This document shows, in pieces, positions 1,957-28,536 of a stretch of DNA of 48,797 nucleotides. Source of the stretch: Perkinsus chesapeaki ATCC PRA-425 (taxonomy: Eukaryota > Protista > Perkinsozoa); contig JAAPAO010000238.1 in NCBI GenBank assembly GCA_013115145.1, positions 1 to 48,797 on the forward strand. The letters run 5' to 3'. Each line of letters opens with the position of its first letter. The stretch's first letter is position 1. The translations under genes and the position numbers were made by a program. The notes under the pieces were generated by a model. The model had not been told where the DNA came from, made no database searches, and saw nothing but the letters and a program-made list of their open reading frames with translations.

Positions 1957-3138
1957 GTGTTCATCTCTATCTCTATCATCATCATCATCATTGCCGTCAT
2001 CTTGCCAGTTCTATCCATGTCATCATCATCATCAGTAACACCTTCACAAGAAAGAGCATGTTTGAATTTGTGGGCACTCTCTCAATGGGGTCCGTTTCAC
2101 GACCCTGTTAATAAGTTGGTGGATCGAACACCATATGCACTGTCTATATTAGAGTATAGTAGAGCTAATCCTCAGCAACAGATGGAAATAGTAGCATGCT
2201 GGAAAAAGGGATGTATACAAGATATGGATTCATCAATATGTGTTTTAAAAGATTCGGGGCATCTATTAATAGTAGATTCTGTCCGACTTGAAGTTCGAGA
2301 GATATCTTTGAAAGATATAAGCGAAGTTAAAGTAAGAAGTATGCTGATGCAAGGAGTTGATGGAGGCATGGAGATCAGCGAGTGGCAGGAAAGTTGTGCA
2401 AATAGTCGGCTTATATGCAAGTTAAATACAATGTGTTTTTCGATGTGTGTGGATGAGAAAAATAATGAAGTATTAATAACGCATCCGAGAGGCATTACTG
2501 AAGAAGAGCAACGGGAACGAATAATAGCTGTATCATTGGGAACTTCACTGGAGCAAGTAGTTATTAATACTACTTCACTGAATCTGGGGTACTGCATTCC
2601 TGCTATAAAATACTCCTCAAAGAGCGGATATATTTACATACTTGATCACGAGAATTCGTCATTATTACGCACTCAACGTGTTGGTAATGAACTGAATCTT
2701 GTATCGATACTTTCGCTCTATCATTCAAAGATTGGCGGTCACGTTCAAAGATTATCTCTTCCGGAAGACTTTGATATTTTCATAGACCAAGAAGGCAGGG
2801 AATGCATAGTAGTAGCTGACACCGACAATAAGCGAATAGTTTTGTGGCGCGGTGACGATCCTATTGGTATTGACTTGACTGGTCGTATGAGTGGTGAGCC
2901 TATCTCTGTTGAAGTTGATACTACCAGACGATTTGGTTCTTCTCGGGGCCCTCGAGTTTACTTTGGTATGCTACCTACTAATAACATGTTGGAACTTGAC
3001 TTAACATCATTAAATATAGTTGAACGAATGTCGGAAGTGATACCATTAGACATAGCCATTGATAAGAGGAATGGTAGAGTATTTGTAGCAGATGATATTA
3101 CTAAGAGTATTATACAAGTTGGTTTTGCTGTTTCATAA
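1957..3138 (+). CDS. NHL-repeat / beta-propeller protein, intronless; start uncertain (first in-frame ATG is 2017)
   Basis: 393-codon uninterrupted ORF with repeated NHL-like blades (LPEDFDIF...IVVADTDNKRIVLW; PLDIAIDKRNGRVFVADDITKSI). The ORF track starts at GTG 1957, after an in-frame TAA at 1945. Confidence 0.7.
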   Translation: MFISISIIIIIIAVILPVLSMSSSSSVTPSQERACLNLWALSQWGPFHDPVNKLVDRTPYALSILEYSRANPQQQMEIVACWKKGCIQDMDSSICVLKDSGHLLIVDSVRLEVREISLKDISEVKVRSMLMQGVDGGMEISEWQESCANSRLICKLNTMCFSMCVDEKNNEVLITHPRGITEEEQRERIIAVSLGTSLEQVVINTTSLNLGYCIPAIKYSSKSGYIYILDHENSSLLRTQRVGNELNLVSILSLYHSKIGGHVQRLSLPEDFDIFIDQEGRECIVVADTDNKRIVLWRGDDPIGIDLTGRMSGEPISVEVDTTRRFGSSRGPRVYFGMLPTNNMLELDLTSLNIVERMSEVIPLDIAIDKRNGRVFVADDITKSIIQVGFAVS

Positions 3139-3548
3139 TAATGTAGTCTATTTGAGTTAAGTATGTTAAAGGCAAGTCATATCAACTAAATAGTACTCAA
3201 GTACTATTTTAATAATACTTCTATTTTACCTGTTTATAATACGTGAAGTTAGATTGTGTACGTCGCGTAATTACACGTTTACTACTCATTTTTTTGTGGT
3301 GGTTCAGTTGGTTTATCCCACAGCAACTCCACTTACTGTAATTGATCGTATTGATATGAGAGTATACAGTCAGGCTACGGTATGTGTAATGCTATTATCT
3401 ATGTAATGTTGTTTTGTAATATTTTTCAATGAAAAATTTTCATAGTTTCAGTACACCTTACGGTTCAGAGTAGATTAATTCCTCCACATATTGTACTTCC
3501 TCGTGGTTTATTATAAATAATAATAGTTAGTTGATAACGATTGCCGGT

Positions 3549-6500
3549 ATGTTAATATCACGCTCATCATCAACCTCAACACTTACGTCACTACAACAAC
3601 AACAATACTATATAACTAGAATATTGCCCATTTTGACAAGTAGAAGATCGTTTAGAGCTCGTGGTAGAGTGAAGCGCGGTGAACTAATACAGAACATACC
3701 TATAGAGAGGCTTGATGCTGATGGTAATGAAATTGATACAATGGTTACTACATCACCACCTCTAACTCAGGTAATGGTCGAACAACTATTGAATGGAACA
3801 GGTTTCGAGGTTGCTCCTTTAATGATACCGAACTTGTCGTTCCTGGTGCACTACCAGGTGAAACTGTTACTGTTAAAATAGGAGGGGTAAGCAAAACGTC
3901 TTAGATAGGGTATTCAATGTAAATATTCTTACGTCGATGTACTCTGTATAATAATACATCGAAGTCGTCGAGTCCTGGACTAAGTCATTGCTCTAGGAAC
4001 CTCCTTAGAGCATCTACTTAGGCATTCCATACCATCTCACAGGTATCACTGTAATAGGATAGTCTTACTGGACCCAGCGTACTCTTATCTGATATTACTC
4101 ATCTTGTTTGTTACAGCACCATTCTTTTTTAGGTAAGAGGTAATGGTAAAAAATATAACGAAGTTTTCGTACATGTATTCGCCCGACGAAATTGGGCAGT
4201 TGAACCCGGAAGCTTTGGTAAGTTCCACCTACTACTTTATCAAGGATAACTAGATCCTCAGCTTTATGTATTCACTAACGTTTGATTTGATTGTTGTTGA
4301 TAATAATAGTGTAGTTGGTTCGCATCATCTTTCGAGTATTGTAGAACATCATCCGTTGTCTACAGTATTCTCAGTAAATCGAGTCTTATACTTTTTAACT
4401 CTATAACAGTTAGCTCGATGCATTTGAAACATTCTGAAGCGACGCACTTGTTGTTGAATTCGGGAACATAGAAGATATCAGCAGCATCAGTTCACCCCCG
4501 CCCCCTGATTCCTAATATTTGCTATCCCTCCTTCATTCCTACTCAAATAGCTGCTCTATTCTACTCTTATCCACGGCTACCCCTATCCCGACATTCCCTT
4601 CACCATAGGTTCGCCCATGCTATGGATGAATAGTACTGAGATACTCGACTATCATAAGAATTCACCATATGAGCTACCAGAGGAAGAAGTATGCTTTATA
4701 TTACCACGATACTGAGTATGTTATCATCGCATTCGCAGGTTTGTGGGTATTTCGACAAGCGACATGATGAGCTCAGCTGTAGTGGATGTCAAATACCACA
4801 TTTGCAGTATCAGCGGTACGTATAATGGGAAGCATAGTCATTAATAATGCATTTCAGGCAACTATTGTGGAAACGTAAACTGCTGTCAGAGATGATACCA
4901 AATGAATTCCAACATAAACAAGATAATGATAAACTTATACCAATAGTGGCTAGTGGCTTAGAGTCATTTAATGAGCATCGAACATGTACATAATAATATA
5001 ACATTATACACCTCCTCAAATATCTAAATCAATCTATATTTAGATTCCCAAATACTCCACTCACCTGATAAATGGGATCCTCCTGTTATTGGACATTATG
5101 CTAGAAAAGCCAATGCTCCAGGAGAGAGAAGAGAAGTGTAATAGCAACTATAGCATCAATAATCGCCTACATTATTGAAGCATTGTCATTTATTCGTGGG
5201 CTTCAACGGGGCCCATATATGGAGGTAATCAAGTTTTCGTTCCCCCTAGTGTTGTTACTGGTGGACATTGTCCACGTAAAGAGCCACCAGCATCCGAAGC
5301 TGAGAGAGCTATTATGGAGGTATTGGCTGAACACTATAAGATCGACCGAGAATACTACAGCGCGTAGGAGCATAACCACTCTATCACCACTTGATCGTTG
5401 TTTATAGGTATGATTTCTGGCGACATAGAGGTAACTTTATGGGTATTAACTTCCACATTGGAAAGGATAAGGATGGTCGGCGACATGTACTTGTTAACAT
5501 TCTAATGACAATGGATATTATAAGAGATAAGATGGATCCGTTAGTGGATGCTCTTATTAAAGTAAAAAGTGAGTTTTAGTAGGTAGATCAACGCAAGTTG
5601 TTCAGGTACCGCAAGTTGATGCCATCGTTGCCAATAAAGTCGATAAAGTATATTATCCGGGCTTTAATATTAAATCTGATGATAAGCATCAAATGGTAAA
5701 CCTTAATACCGGATATTTTAATTGTTAATATCATTCAGCTACTATATGGTGATGAGCCTTATATACCACATACACTAACTGTTGGTGCCGATAATAGGAA
5801 AATACCTATTAAGATAGGGGTTGGGGATGTGTTATGGTCTAATGCAACTATACATAAAGAGATACTCGATACTGTGGCTGAGTTTGCTAAACCTAATCAA
5901 AGTGATTAAATGACATGTACATTTTACAGGACAATATCTTCCCTTATTAGATGACGTGATTTGGGATGTTTGGTCCGCTAATGGAGCATCAACTTTAACA
6001 TTAGCCGATAAATGCCGGCATATAGTATCATTAGATGCTTCTAGAACACGGTGAGAACTGATATATATTATATCGATACTATCGAGTATATTATACTGAT
6101 CGATATATATATTATCATTTCATAATTGTATTTAGAGTCAACGGTCTTAAGGAGAATCTACGACTAAATCCAGATATAGCATCAAGAGTTACACCAGTAT
6201 TAGCCAATATGTATAGGGAAGATACTTTAGTGTAAGTAGTCTTTTAATAATAATGATCGCAAACCACTTTGATTCTATCACCGACATACTGGCATTCATG
6301 AGGCGTGTATGGAGCAGCTGCTATAAGTCAGCAGTATTATCTATGTTCAAAGGATATTCCACCGCGATAGTTGACTCAAATTAAATACCATTCATACGAC
6401 ATGACTAGTGTAGATACCTATCTGGTCACATTCATCGTAACCGTGCTCTGCAACTACTCGATACCGCTTACAAAAGCCTTGAGGATGCCCGGAGACTGAG

Positions 6501-8423
6501 GAGTATCGGTGTGGTCCAAGGAATCAATAGAACTAAAAGTCTAGTGGGTTAATGAAATAATAATACTTCTGTAGAACTGATGCCTATGATAGGAGCGAAA
6601 ACATGCCAAGCAGTTCACTGAGTTGCCGGCTGACGTCTCGGAAGTTTTGAAGGCCGAAGCTAAACTGGCATTGGCGGAGGGGACAATTGAAGGGGATAAC
6701 AGATTCAACTTACTTGTCAAGTATGTCGTCGTTAGGATGATGAGGGAAAGTCGGTATGAGGAATTAATGCTTCAGACATATGAGATCGACCAGAACACCA
6801 GAAGGGCTACAGCCTATGTTACCGATAAAACAACCCTGGATGCTCGAGCTTACTCCACAAATGCAGAAGAGCATTACAGCAGCGTAAGGAATCATAAACA
6901 GAATGATTGTTAGATAACTTATATTAATGAATATCGATTTGGTCTTAAAAATGGTTACGTGGTGTGGTATATCAACTTTTAAGCTGGCACAAGTTAGAGG
7001 CCGTTGCATTAAAGAATATTTACATCAATTTGTAACTCTTTTTATGTTCGTGTTTTGGTGTACTCTCTATTGAAGTTGATCGATTTGATAGATACCAGCA
7101 AGTTCGGAGTAGAATAGATAGAGGTGAGGCTGCTGATGATGTTATACAAACACCTGATGAGGCCGAGAGGGAATCTCAATTAGTTGATGCGGCATATATG
7201 TGGCTTATGAATAAAGTATTATTTTATGCCACATTAATTGCAAACATCCATTCAGTCTAAACCAACTACCGTAGAAAAGCAACTTGCAGAATCAGAGAAT
7301 CGAAGAAAAGACTTGACAGCAGGGATAAAAAGCTCGAGTGTTGAGCCAACTGAGAGATCACCTGCATTGCCTGGAGCTGGCCGACCGTTTTATAGTTGGG
7401 ATACACTTGATAAGGCGAAAGAGAAGGATGATGTTAAGGTAAACGCTCTGCGCGCATAATCATCCAAATATGCTTTCAATGGTTGTGACGGAATCTCAAG
7501 AATTCCAGTCAATTCCTTCTCTATCGGTAAGCATCTCAGCGACCGCTCACTTTCAGGAAGAGCTAAGTATGAATATGGATGCTATAGAGCAATTGGAAGA
7601 GGAAGGCCCTGTCTTTGAGATCACCCCTCCTAACGATGGACTTACGAAGCAAAGGGATGAAGAAGATGAACATCAAGCTGGAACAGCAGCAGCAGCTGAA
7701 GAGTGAGTTATCATTTACATGTAACAACTAGCCACCGCTTGTAGGAGAGAAGTTATAAAATCACGTACCGATGAATGGAGAACAACGACTTTACCATCTC
7801 CTGATATTGTGGTCATCAGTTTCCCACCTAAATCTAAAAGAAGGTATAAATGCTTGTTCAACGCGTGTGTGACGTTATCATTATCAGTGAAAAGGAGGGT
7901 AATCTCCCCAAACTATTCCGTCGATGGCTCAGAGCTTCAGCAGTTAAACGTATTGTTGCTGTATTCACCGATCCTAAAGGTCTATCTAAAGATGTTGGGT
8001 AGGAACAACCTATCTTATAGACTTATAGACTGTCACTTTGCTGCCATTGCCTCATCTGTGACGATAAAGATATCATCATCAAAGCAGCCGCGGCATCGAC
8101 CGTCGACGTAACGTCGAGGCTCGACGTAATCATGAAGTCTAAACCTTTTCCGTATAACTTGTATGATTTAACTGTTTGAATAGAATGGTACTAAGCGTAA
8201 GTGGTTGAGCACACTTTAATGATTTGCACATAACAGATATTTACATTACCACTAAAACATAATGCCTAAATCGAATTAAGTGGGATGCTCGATAAAAGCG
8301 CAACTTCGACCCAATCTTATTCTAATATGTTCTAGGCACTTGAAGCAGCTGGGCTATTCAGCAGATGATATTAAAGTTATTGATGCACAACCAGGAACGA
8401 TGGATGTAGGGGATGAGGATTAA
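3549..8423 (+). CDS. RlmD/RumA/TRM2-family RNA m5U methyltransferase homologue, about 23 exons, probably catalytically inactive, with an organellar presequence
   Basis: Hand-spliced continuous model. It shows a TRAM domain (LDADGNGR...VVPGALPGETVTVKI), a Cys cluster (CGYF...CSGCQIPHLQYQRQLLWKRKLL), VGFNG...GHCP, a SAM-fold segment (DVIWDVWSANGASTLTLADKCRHIVSLDASRTRVNGLKENLRLN) and the C-terminal PDIVVISFPPK...KRIVAVFTDPKGLSKDVGHLKQLGYSADDIKVIDAQPGT. Stop TAA 8421-8423. Confidence 0.75.
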
Positions 8424-9589
8424 GCATCCAAACTCGTTGAATATATCTTTGGTATTCAGGTGGTTGTGGTAGTTCAGTTAAACCTCAAGTCTGCGAAATC
8501 TGATAATGAAGAGATCATCGACATCCCACGACTTCATTATCACAGCCATGAGAATTCCCCATAATGAGTGATGATGCCACCTCCTCCCTTGTCATGTTGT
8601 TTCTAAGTATGTCATTCTTGTGAATCGATAATTCATCAGAGTTGCATTTCCAGTGACATGACAGTGAATGAACTGCAGGCATAAGGAGGCTACTGCTGCT
8701 AATCCTTATCACTACCGTGTACAGTATATGGCTTGTCAACAGTACTTTATTACAGTTCACACATTTCTTGATTTCTTGCGGCGAATAAGAATTCACAGGC
8801 CTCTAGAAAAGTGAAACTCAACGGCCTAGTAAGATCGATACCATGCAACCCATCCAAATTGAACATGTGAGGTTTATGAAGTTGGCCTCGTTGTCTAGTT
8901 GACATCGTCAATTTTGGCACGCACGCGCGGGCAGCTGGTCGCGCATGCCACCTCCAAACACAGTATCCCAGGGGATACTGTGTTTGGCTTCATATTTGAC
9001 CTTCCTCTTCCTCCTTCCGTTCCCAGGTTGGACATCATTACCTGACTGAGTTTAGGTTGGATACATGGTCGTACAAGAGCTTCGGGGTTCGGGTTCGCTG
9101 CGCTGCTGCAGCATTCGCCCACTCGAGAGGAAGAGTTGGTTGATGATGTACAACTGGCAAGCAATTATCACCTAGCAGCCACAGAAAGCGAAGATCGCGA
9201 GATCACTGCCGAGACGAGCTATCTTCATACCGAGTCGTAGTCTTTGTAATAGTCGTCATGTGAGCTCCTATGCAAGTCAATAGCGGAACATCTTGAACAT
9301 CACAAACTCCAGAACATCTTGACGAGCATACTGATGATATCAATGCCATGGGCTTGCAAAGGTGCAACTACCGGGTCCGATGCAAATTCAATTTGCATCG
9401 TGCAATCCTCATTTTGCTTATTACTGCTTACTCATGCTCAATACTCATCTCAGGACTGCTTGCCCAAATTGCGTTTATGCACCTTCCCTTTGTATGGGCA
9501 AGTGGTTTATTGTTTCAACCAATTTGGTTGATACCGTAATAAATGTACCCACTCAACAATGTTGATGCCCTCACAGGCGATCCTCAAAG

Positions 9590-10256
9590 ACGATCATGCC
9601 CATGACTGGACTCAACGATGGCCAAGAGCAAGTTGGCACATTGTTGTCCTCTAACCGCACTTAAGTACTACGAGAAGCATGGCACGGAGCGTTATTTTGT
9701 TGGAAGATCATGTTGGCTTCTAAAACCGGGAGGAGGTGGTAGGTTAGGAGCTGCTGGTACTTCGCAGAATCCAAACGAGTATCCACCACTACCAGCGCGA
9801 GCTTCTGGTTCTCGCATATGGCTTCCCCGAAACCCGAAACCATCACTGACCCTCCACCGAGGCTGCGCTTCGACCTCTGTAGCCCACAGAGACTTGGGGA
9901 GCAGTAATGATAGACTCCATCTCGGCCATCCAAATCAATTTTTTTCTCATCGGTAAAAACGGAATTTCCGAAATTCCATCAATGAGATATTAGGGGCGCG
10001 ACTAACATCTAACCCAAGGTCCCTGACTACCCCGGCGCAGCTGAGTTCCGGATCCTAGACCAAAGCTCGCACAATTCTTCGCTTGTCGGCTGGGGATATT
10101 TTGGGCTTAGGAGTTCTAGGTTAGAACCCCTTCTCTCACGTGATTTTCTCCCTCTTTGACTATTTTGCTGATCACGCTCTGGATAACTTGGTATGCAGTA
10201 GCCCGATCTTTCTGCGTGAACTTCTTCTGACCGTTTGATCCCAACTGGGCAGACAT
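9590..10256 (-). mobile_element. Degenerate Tc1/mariner (DD34E-type) transposase remnant
   Basis: Fragments PKISPADKRRIVRALV*DPELSCAGVVRDLGLDVSR (HTH), VFTDEKK..LDGRDG, GGGSVMV, LDSAKYQQLL..HLLP, IFQQNNAPCHASRST and WPSLSP, with stops, frameshifts and an internal deletion. No TIR pair found. Confidence 0.85.
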
Positions 10257-26478: not shown

Positions 26479-28536
26479 ATGGTTTACGGTAAAGTATTTG
26501 GTCTGGATGGTGGTAAATACACATATAGAGGTTATATGGTATTATTAACATCAACTATGATAGCATGGAGTCTCCTGCTTAATATTATAACATATGCTTT
26601 TGTCTATTTCATTAATAGACGATATGTAGAATCACCAATAAATAAAGTTAATAAACCACATTGGAGTTGGTCGATATTAGTTGTTCTAACAAACGCTTGG
26701 CTTTGTGTATTCTTATTGATATTTTATGTACTTTTCGGTGCATTTATGTTTGGTGACTGGCACGCATGGATCTACTATGTAGCTTTACCTGCATTGTACC
26801 TAGTATACCTTATTGTTATAATATTATTACGCAATAAATCTCGTTCTTGTTGTCCATGGAGTTTGGGTACTCTAGGGTATCTATTAGCAATACAATGCTG
26901 GTTTATTATACAAATACCATCTATGTGGAGTTATACTTATCTCGTATGGTTAGTTGGTATAGCAGCGTCGATACCATTAATTCTTAAAGTAACACATACA
27001 TTACATCAAATACGACCTATACGATTATGGTTGAAGAACTGGAAGTTTTATGCCATTCAAACACTCGTTCTTGGCTTTGGTATATTTCTCACGTATCTAT
27101 CAGCTGGTTCATGTGTTGCAGTATACAATCCAATAGCTCCTGGATGGTGGATACCATTAGAAGGCACTTTGTTTTGGTCATCGAGGCTATTAAGATCGTT
27201 CGGTCCTCGTCCTTGCCCTCATGGTCAACGATCACCCTGTCATGTTTATTTAACACCTGCTAAGAATATGAGTAATAGTATGTTTGTCAACGTTCACACC
27301 TCAATTGCTATCAGTTCGCTTGATATCGAATATATTTCTCACAAAGGGGAAGAGAGTGTGAGTGGTTCAATAAGTGCTGATCAGTTCGAAGTACCTCATC
27401 TAGATGAACATGATCAACGTAACGTATATTCAGCTTATCTATCAGATTTAATACCAGATGCTATAGTTACCTTTACCATAAGAAGCAATGATAATAAACT
27501 ATCAGACACTGAATATACGTTTAGAACAGCTCCTATCAATGGGGAAGTAAAGTTCCTTGTTGGTGGTGACGCGGGAACATCTAAAGTTGTTGAAGAAATA
27601 AACTCATTGATAGGTGAACAATCACCATTATTTGCTATTAATGGTGGTGATGTTGCATACGATAATGGTATGTTTACATGTGCTTGTACTTGGGATCAGT
27701 ATCTTTGGGAATGGTCTAAAGTAACAACTCCAGATGGTCATATGATACCTTTAATATTCGCTATTGGTAATCATGATATTGGAGCTAATGATGATAATGA
27801 TGGTGCTATTGAAATGTTTATGGATCCAAAACAATGTGATAACAGTAAACGTGAGAATTCAAGACCGTTATATATTGCATATTTCCCGTTTGAGGAAGTG
27901 GGTGGCAGCGCCCCTGATATATGTGACAGGAAAGTTAATCATGTTCATACTGCTGGAACTGGTGTTACTATCTGGTCGTTGGATTCAATGTATGCTGGTG
28001 GCCCTATGGATGCTGTGCAGTTTGTTGACAGTATGATGCCTAATATGAGCGGTCAAATTAACCATTTTGCTGCTTATCATGTTCCAATGTATTCCAATTC
28101 TAAGGTTGAAAAAAATGAGAATAATCCAATGCGTAGAGTATGGCCATCTTTAATATTAGATAAATATTCATTTAAAGTTGGTTTCGAACATCATGCACAT
28201 ACATTTAAGCGTACTAAACCAATGACAAATAATAGTGTTGCTGATAAAGGTGTTGTATACATTGGTGATGGTAAATGGGGAACTACAGGTTCCCAATTAC
28301 CGAGTAATGATAGTATTATTAAAGGTGAACCCTTCGTAAAATCTGGTACTGACCATCATGTTTGGTATGTTACAGCAAATAGTGATGGAAGAGTTGGTCT
28401 TGAGGCCATCAATAACTATGGTATCACGATTGATAAAGTTGATAATTACGCTACTGGTTATTGGCAACTTCCATCTCAATATTATGCTAATCTAACAGTT
28501 CTATACCCTTTACCAAATCTGTTAAACGATTATTAG
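26479..28536 (+). CDS. Calcineurin-like metallophosphoesterase (purple acid phosphatase-like) with about 6 N-terminal TM helices, intronless
   Basis: 685-aa ORF with motifs GGDAG, GGDVAYDNG, AIGNHD, AYHVPMY and FEHHAHTFKRT, a beta-rich FN3-like segment before them and a hydrophobic N-terminal 210 aa. Confidence 0.9.
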   Translation: MVYGKVFGLDGGKYTYRGYMVLLTSTMIAWSLLLNIITYAFVYFINRRYVESPINKVNKPHWSWSILVVLTNAWLCVFLLIFYVLFGAFMFGDWHAWIYYVALPALYLVYLIVIILLRNKSRSCCPWSLGTLGYLLAIQCWFIIQIPSMWSYTYLVWLVGIAASIPLILKVTHTLHQIRPIRLWLKNWKFYAIQTLVLGFGIFLTYLSAGSCVAVYNPIAPGWWIPLEGTLFWSSRLLRSFGPRPCPHGQRSPCHVYLTPAKNMSNSMFVNVHTSIAISSLDIEYISHKGEESVSGSISADQFEVPHLDEHDQRNVYSAYLSDLIPDAIVTFTIRSNDNKLSDTEYTFRTAPINGEVKFLVGGDAGTSKVVEEINSLIGEQSPLFAINGGDVAYDNGMFTCACTWDQYLWEWSKVTTPDGHMIPLIFAIGNHDIGANDDNDGAIEMFMDPKQCDNSKRENSRPLYIAYFPFEEVGGSAPDICDRKVNHVHTAGTGVTIWSLDSMYAGGPMDAVQFVDSMMPNMSGQINHFAAYHVPMYSNSKVEKNENNPMRRVWPSLILDKYSFKVGFEHHAHTFKRTKPMTNNSVADKGVVYIGDGKWGTTGSQLPSNDSIIKGEPFVKSGTDHHVWYVTANSDGRVGLEAINNYGITIDKVDNYATGYWQLPSQYYANLTVLYPLPNLLNDY

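Follow-up and report, generated by a model that had tools for sequence, protein, structure and literature searches.

What becomes of an RNA methyltransferase gene whose product appears to have lost the residues needed for catalysis? The question is raised by a locus of the protist Perkinsus chesapeaki ATCC PRA-425 on contig JAAPAO010000238.1 (assembly GCA_013115145.1), all 48,797 nucleotides (nt) of which were analyzed and are called the window below. Judged from sequence comparison, a single nuclear gene with some 22 exons occupies the plus strand of the locus (3549–8564), and it is predicted to encode a catalytically dead paralogue of RlmD (RumA), the bacterial-type methyltransferase that forms 5-methyluridine (m5U) in 23S ribosomal RNA (rRNA). 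The best explanation overall, to which we give a probability of roughly 0.6, is a dead RlmD paralogue that binds RNA, most likely in the mitochondrion, and that probably includes a long acidic insert. A first-pass annotation of the window had proposed a pseudo-methyltransferase used as an RNA-binding scaffold, and this is still the best reading because family homology, lost catalytic residues, a kept TRAM domain with the cysteine ligands of an iron-sulfur (Fe-S) cluster, and purifying selection are found together.

Family membership was examined exon by exon, with exons named as in Table 1. A local profile hidden Markov model (HMM) was made from 26 Pseudomonadota RlmD sequences (E. coli rlmD and 25 diverse genes fetched with TIGR00479), and exons were scored singly, with 994 open segments taken from elsewhere in the window as decoys. 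Exons E2 (5.9 bits), E4, E11, and C2 each scored above 994 of 994 decoys, and C3 scored above all but 4. These five exons fall on HMM positions 32–51, 78–93, 295–324, 382–403, and 407–426, respectively, so that genomic order is kept, and their hhalign P values are 6.8e-6, 8.1e-5, 2e-4, 1.4e-3, and 0.05. The weak hhalign matches of E5, E6, E10, and E12 land at the expected places, with E10, E11, and E12 tiling template columns 262–296, 296–326, and 329–357 without a gap. By these exon-wise alignments, the order of domains (TRAM, central four-Cys domain, class I methyltransferase Rossmann domain) is that of RlmD. For the C-terminal part, a protein annotated by NCBI, FOL47_004137 [Perkinsus chesapeaki], was aligned with the family by hhalign over 94 columns (probability 89%, P 2.3e-6), the aligned part being its C-terminal 118 residues. 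All 10 of its 10 ESM Atlas structure neighbours belong to PF05958, with template modelling (TM) scores of 0.61–0.66 over residues 46–152; its feature neighbours in the Atlas are RumA/PF05958 fragments (0.88–0.89), which we treat as a lead only. The homology to RlmD/TrmA that had been proposed from the letters of the DNA is thus borne out by HMM, hhalign, and structure neighbours, and the RlmD positions assigned to its motifs agree with the profile alignments far beyond chance, four colinear exons exceeding every decoy.

The best single match of the locus to the RlmD profile, 6.3 bits, came from an open segment on the minus strand (6395–6523; VSGHP...AEHGY), opposite the first exon of the putative insert. 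It has the loop and GY spacing seen on the plus strand, uninterrupted, and it also lacks the Cys. The segment is either a chance match (independent E-value 0.06 among 305 segments) or the relic of an inverted copy. Since single matches of about 6 bits can be chance, the argument for the family rests on the number of matches and on their colinearity.

All sequence features named by the first-pass annotation (LWSN, DVWSANG, SFPPK at 7818–7832, AVFT, QPGTMD at approximately 8385–8405, the TRAM exon, and C...CSGC) were found in plus-strand exons that can be spliced together. Motif numbering follows E. coli RlmD, and alignments are those of the local HMM and hhalign. The loops at Q265, motif I, D363, C389, and E424 of RlmD align unambiguously with the P. 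chesapeaki gene, and in these alignments the nucleophilic Cys has become Thr, Gln265 has become Trp, the motif IV Asp has become Ser next to an extra Phe, and the GxG of motif I has become AxG. The Glu was rightly reported as lost, but its replacement is a Val contributed by the spliced exon C4; in the unspliced reading MDVGDED, a Gly stands at this position. The TRAM domain is retained, as are the four Fe-S ligands, which align with C81, C87, C90, and C162 of RlmD. In the mechanism of RumA and TrmA, the Cys serves as the nucleophile toward C6 of uracil and the Glu as the base that removes the proton from C5; with Thr and Val in their places, m5U could not be made in this way. A scan of all six frames of 3300–9300 with regular expressions for DP[PA]R, SC[ND]P, P[HQ]T.H.E, and D..[CSA]G.G returned none of them, which rules out, for this locus, that an exon carrying intact motifs lies hidden. 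The first-pass annotation had named such an exon, an alternative C-terminal one with intact DPPR, SC, and HxE motifs, as an outcome that would refute its proposal. The predicted product is thus a dead member of the RlmD family in which the predicted 4Fe-4S site is retained.

The gene region is made of numerous short plus-strand open segments with short GT-AG introns between them. The exon model was rebuilt by hand, genome searches were made in the 41.7-Mb assembly, and the whole long model, joined in a script, comprises 923 codons with no stop. The 49-nt intron between E10 and E11 (5902–5950) yields exactly the two residues that the profile expects, and a 28-nt alternative adds seven. The gene had been taken to end at 8423, with stop codon 8421–8423 after ..MDVGDED; this end is superseded, since FOL47_004137 is spliced after GTMD (donor GTAGGG at 8406, acceptor at 8459) and runs to 8564. 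Exon C4 is supported by this splicing, by ESM Atlas structure matches that reach residue 162 of FOL47_004137, and by hhalign. Scans of the locus for tRNA and against Rfam gave no match.

Apart from its motifs, the predicted protein differs from E. coli RlmD in a spacer of 11 rather than 5 residues between the first two Cys, in 27 extra residues after the TRAM domain, in a presequence-like N-terminal extension, in a C-terminal tail of 24 residues, and in a probable insert of 304 residues between motifs III and IV. Is this insert, announced as about 300 residues in the first-pass annotation, part of the protein? The stretch from E12 to C1 is 1.5 kb long and occurs in a single copy in the genome, and an origin of the insert as a repeat or transposon was rejected for this single copy. 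The putative insert has an isoelectric point (pI) of 5.15, as compared with 8.7 for the remaining protein. The splice graph contains an in-frame GT-AG chain (6231 > 6414–6543 > 6593–6908 > 7076–7215 > 7256–7438 > 7557–7702 > 7745; the second insert exon ends at 6883 in a variant) with introns of 40–182 nt, as against 42–391 nt elsewhere in the gene. When codon-usage log-odds were trained on the genome's long open frames, the chained segments proved to be the five best plus-strand scorers of the region, at 0.19–0.32 per codon; the other plus-strand segments reach at most 0.13, the median of 965 null segments is 0.05, and the Fisher combined p is approximately 9e-4. The largest insert exon (97 residues) is protein-like by language-model recognition (2786), and its single-sequence AlphaFold2 (AF2) model is all-helix, at low confidence (predicted local distance difference test, pLDDT, 53).

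The alternative is that donor 6232 is spliced directly to acceptor 7744 and the insert is not translated, giving a compact protein of 618 residues, RlmD-sized and with the same dead fold, in which case the coding-like segments would belong to an alternative isoform or would be chance. This skip from 6231 to 7745 is in frame, brings together the strongest donor (8.1 bits) and the strongest acceptor (10.2 bits) of the region, and makes the spacing from motif III to motif IV near-canonical again, whereas only 1.3 bits are reached by the acceptors of the insert at 6413, 6592, and 7075. A search of 1.84 billion representatives with the largest insert exon, in which proteins of P. olseni and P. marinus were to be expected, returned no homologue and nothing but three tandem-repeat artefacts. 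However, an intron of 1513 nt would be approximately four times longer than the longest otherwise seen in the gene, the NCBI model uses the junction 7702|7745, and both the codon usage of all five segments and the language-model recognition of the largest would be left to an isoform or to accident. We regard the long form as likely and the direct splice as a distinctly less favoured, though serious, competitor. Of the claimed insertion, then, the coding-like codon usage and the in-frame chain speak for it, and the weak acceptors, the missing homologue, and the in-frame skip speak against it.

Another question is whether the locus is one gene or two. NCBI splits it into at least two models, of which FOL47_004137 (170 amino acids; window 7575–8564) covers only the C-terminal part; it starts at a Met at approximately 7581, inside the putative insert. 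If this annotation were followed, an N-terminal RNA-binding protein with TRAM and Fe-S domains would be accompanied by a separate small protein beginning at that Met. The Rossmann domain would then be broken between its third and fourth beta-strands, and half a Rossmann fold is implausible as an independent protein. The two parts lie on one strand and can be joined in frame, and the strong splice sites at 7439 and 7556 span the supposed gene boundary. Separate halves had been named beforehand as an outcome that would overturn the single-gene proposal; the NCBI annotation does divide them, and the colinear fold speaks against the division. Because motifs I–III (E10–E12) and motif IV onward (C1–C4) share one colinear template, we regard the split as a probable error of the annotation, the models probably having to be merged, and consider two genes improbable.

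Less probable still is that the protein remains an enzyme, with a non-canonical RNA methylation or some other activity dependent on S-adenosylmethionine (SAM) or Fe-S. What survives would suit such an activity: an Asp in motif II, the second Gly in motif I, PPK in motif IV, and an Fe-S site that is both kept and conserved. Against it, the formation of m5U requires a Cys nucleophile and a Glu base at positions where Thr and Val are found, other residues have also taken the place of the Gln and of the Asp of motif IV, and no alternative exon offers intact motifs.

The N-terminal half could be compared with Perkinsus olseni. In tblastn, exons E1–E8 were found in order on the 18-kb P. olseni contig JABAHT010000617.1, which ends in E8, with amino-acid identities of 81–97%; for E5–E7 and the first 15 residues of E8 these are 81–93%, with conserved intron phases. 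Eight of eight intron positions and phases are common to the two species, with GT-AG ends and with differing lengths and sequences. Lengths of these conserved introns differ up to ninefold (50 vs 454 nt). The gene directly upstream in the window (1957–3138, plus strand; Pfam NHL, E = 2e-8) has NHL repeats and is 64% identical to P. olseni KAF4702261.1, and the order of NHL gene and RlmD-like gene, in the same orientation, recurs on the P. olseni contig. Over 271 codons, the proportion of nonsynonymous differences (pN) is 0.067 and that of synonymous differences (pS) is 0.95, the latter being saturated. Given this pS and the divergence of the introns, conservation at the nucleotide level is informative between these two species. 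Since the syntenic exons and introns are conserved and pN is low against a saturated pS, the N-terminal half, which would bind RNA and the cluster, is a real gene under strong purifying selection, and the selection invoked for the scaffold is confirmed for this tested half. A decaying pseudogene, or chance open frames and an annotation artefact, as the numerous short exons, the split annotation, and the absence of RNA data might suggest, is hardly credible in view of this selection, the eight conserved introns, a stop-free chain of 923 codons, and exon-wise homology that far exceeds the decoys.

A mitochondrial location is suggested by the N-terminus. Among the first 45 residues are 9 Lys or Arg, 1 Asp or Glu, and 13 Ser or Thr, in keeping with the basic, Ser/Thr-rich N-terminus reported earlier. 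The first 20–28 residues or so differ in length and sequence in P. olseni (about 28 are unalignable), and conservation begins with RSFRxRGRVKRGEL, residues 29–58 of E1 being 83% identical. A basic, poorly conserved N-terminus ahead of a conserved start is the pattern typical of a mitochondrial presequence. Based on this feature, the mitochondrion is the most likely candidate location.

Several results weigh against the explanation preferred here, that of a dead, RNA-binding, most likely mitochondrial RlmD paralogue with its insert. The curated family thresholds of PF05958 and TIGR00479 are reached neither by single exons nor by FOL47_004137. When the genome was searched in six frames with PF05958 and TIGR00479 (NCBIfam rumA), the locus gave no match; hmmscan of the exons and of FOL47_004137 gave no PF05958 at E ≤ 10, with a weak TRAM match of E2 as the only hit among the exons; and sequence searches of the PDB with single exons and FOL47_004137 found nothing. 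The AF2 single-sequence model of FOL47_004137 (pLDDT 47) and that of the insert exon are poor, and Foldseek found no PDB match for them at E ≤ 0.001. Metagenome scans with FOL47_004137 and exon 10 also gave no match. The conservation data cover the N-terminal half and not the dead C-terminal motifs, and word searches with the C1 region and FOL47_004137 returned FOL47_004137 itself and no C-terminal orthologue. Mitochondrial targeting was judged from the composition and conservation of the N-terminus, and the main texts of papers on the Perkinsus and Toxoplasma mitoribosomes mention no RlmD-like protein (PMC13623125 and preprint; PMC11742926). The joined gene model, moreover, is a prediction from the genomic sequence. 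The NCBI split and, for the insert, the weak acceptors and the missing homologue described above are to be added to this list.

Table 1. Exons and RlmD-equivalent sites of the predicted P. chesapeaki gene (window coordinates)
Feature	Position	Strand	Description
E1	3549–3723	+	Start codon and basic, presequence-like N-terminus; residues 29–58 (RSFRxRGRVKRGEL...) conserved
E2	3771–3886	+	TRAM domain core VVPGALPGETVTVKI; Pfam TRAM E = 0.008; 97% identical in P. olseni
E3	4133–4217	+	End of TRAM barrel; 96% identical in P. olseni, intron position kept
E3b	4609–4688	+	Lineage-specific segment of 27 residues, TRAM to first Cys; 88% identical in P. olseni
E4	4739–4815	+	Predicted Fe-S ligands C-x11-C-x2-C; codons 4742, 4778, 4787 = RumA C81, C87, C90
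E5	4858–4985	+	Central domain; weak in-order hhalign placement
E6	5044–5137	+	Central domain; weak in-order hhalign placement
E7	5250–5363	+	Central domain; fourth Cys in HCPRK, codon 5269 = RumA C162 (QCPIL)
E8	5408–5561	+	Central domain; P. olseni support for first 15 residues only, rest hand-modelled
E9	5606–5695	+	Central domain; hand-modelled, P. olseni contig stops before it
E10	5739–5901	+	Strand equivalent to FxQxN = VLWSN, W at 5835–5837; template 262–296
E11	5951–6050	+	SAM motif I = DVWSANG, 5965–5985; motif II Asp, 6034–6036
E12	6136–6231	+	Motif III region; GTAAGT donor at 6232, score 8.1; template 329–357, hhalign P 0.066
Putative insert exons	6414–6543, 6593–6908 (or to 6883), 7076–7215, 7256–7438, 7557–7702	+	Boundaries of first three exons uncertain
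C1	7745–7843	+	Beta-4 and degenerate motif IV, DIVVISFPPK; from NCBI FOL47_004137 and hhalign
C2	7888–7998	+	Catalytic loop RIVAVFTDPKGLSKD vs RlmD RIVYVSCNPATLARD; Thr for C389 at 7967–7969
C3	8336–8405	+	..LGY..IDAQPGTMD = RlmD ..AGY..LDMFPHTGH
C4	8460–8564	+	Last beta-strand VVVVVQLNLK, tail of 24 residues, stop codon
Q265	5835–5837		RlmD FIQVN → VLWSN; Trp
Motif I	5965–5985		RlmD DLFCGMG → DVWSANG; Asp and second Gly kept, first Gly → Ala
Motif II	6034–6036		RlmD Glu → Asp; acidic residue kept
D363	7818–7823		RlmD LLDPAR → VISFPPK; Ser and extra Phe, PPK for PAR
C389	7967–7969		RlmD VYVSCNP → VAVFTDP; Thr
E424	8463–8465		RlmD GHLES → MDVVV; Val
C81, C87, C90, C162	Codons 4742, 4778, 4787, 5269		Predicted Fe-S ligands, all kept; also kept in P. 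olseni

Other members of the family were seen elsewhere in the genome. TrmA/TRM2-type exons with ..VDPPRSG.. and ..PHTYHCE.., apparently intact, lie on contig C1391 at about 34.4–34.6 kb, and contig C3237 has at about 77.8 kb a TrmA/TRM2-type open segment with ..KYVSCNP... From such intact-motif exons on other contigs it appears that the organism also keeps seemingly active m5U enzymes. On the minus strand of contig C3193, a single-exon open reading frame of 461 residues matches the rumA model at 284–373, in the Rossmann part only (E = 5.9e-4); its N-terminus is rich in Arg, Leu, and Ser, and its DPP motif is apparently intact. It may encode another kind of RNA methyltransferase that depends on SAM, perhaps similar to RlmI and perhaps located in an organelle. 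Within the window, a minus-strand open segment at 9661–9933, ending in ..QQNNAPCHASRST, resembles a fragment of a Tc1/mariner-type transposase, and a single open frame of 685 residues at 26479–28536 on the plus strand has weak Pfam matches to the purple acid phosphatase N-terminal domain (E = 5e-5) and to metallophosphoesterase (E = 0.007).

What could a dead RlmD do? Under the preferred explanation of a non-catalytic RlmD paralogue, the protein would no longer methylate and would bind RNA in a structural or assembly role that possibly depends on Fe-S; the site of its action would most likely be the mitochondrion, at fragmented rRNAs or the mitoribosome, and the protein would probably include the insert, acidic, helical, and about 304 residues long, from motif III to motif IV. 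In Perkinsus mitochondria, the rRNAs are fragmented and the genes are frameshifted (PMC9550989). The mitoribosome of Perkinsus has an enlarged and repurposed set of proteins in common with that of Toxoplasma (PMC13623125 and preprint; PMC11742926), and among the proteins that co-migrate with it, many are uncharacterised (PMC13623125 and preprint).

Similar cases have been described in other systems. In Trypanosoma brucei, deactivated MRM and RPUSD4 are structural assembly factors of the mitochondrial large ribosomal subunit (PMC7957421). These proteins and mt-LAF4 (PMC7957421) resemble the P. chesapeaki protein in belonging to rRNA-modification families, in having a disabled site, in a structural, RNA-holding role, and in their occurrence in a protist with unusual mitochondrial rRNA. 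They differ in fold (SPOUT methyltransferase and pseudouridine synthase) and in that their roles were seen by cryo-electron microscopy, whereas that of the P. chesapeaki protein is deduced. Mitoribosome assembly by METTL17/Rsm22 depends on a 4Fe-4S cluster (PMC11046306, PMC12375894); this protein likewise combines a methyltransferase fold with a 4Fe-4S cluster, acts in small-subunit assembly, and is not a demonstrated methyltransferase. However, it represents an unrelated class I subfamily, with its cluster site elsewhere and with no TRAM domain.

The use of deactivated RNA-modifying enzymes as ribosome assembly or structural proteins is thus already known from trypanosome mitochondria, and in the literature we found no description of a deactivated member of the RlmD/TrmA family or of a myzozoan case. 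A more specific picture, which is tentative and which we hold to be rather doubtful, is that in Perkinsus, and perhaps in other myzozoans, an Fe-S rRNA methyltransferase of bacterial type was turned into a non-catalytic, cluster-bearing component or assembly checkpoint of the mitoribosome. The TRAM domain and the dead active-site pocket would grip the piece of rRNA that corresponds to the substrate hairpin of RlmD, and the insert would serve as a new protein-protein module. A dead RlmD that is under selection and has an Fe-S site is a candidate for one of the uncharacterised proteins migrating together with the Perkinsus mitoribosome, and it suggests that the supply of Fe-S clusters may be linked to mitochondrial translation, as it is with METTL17.

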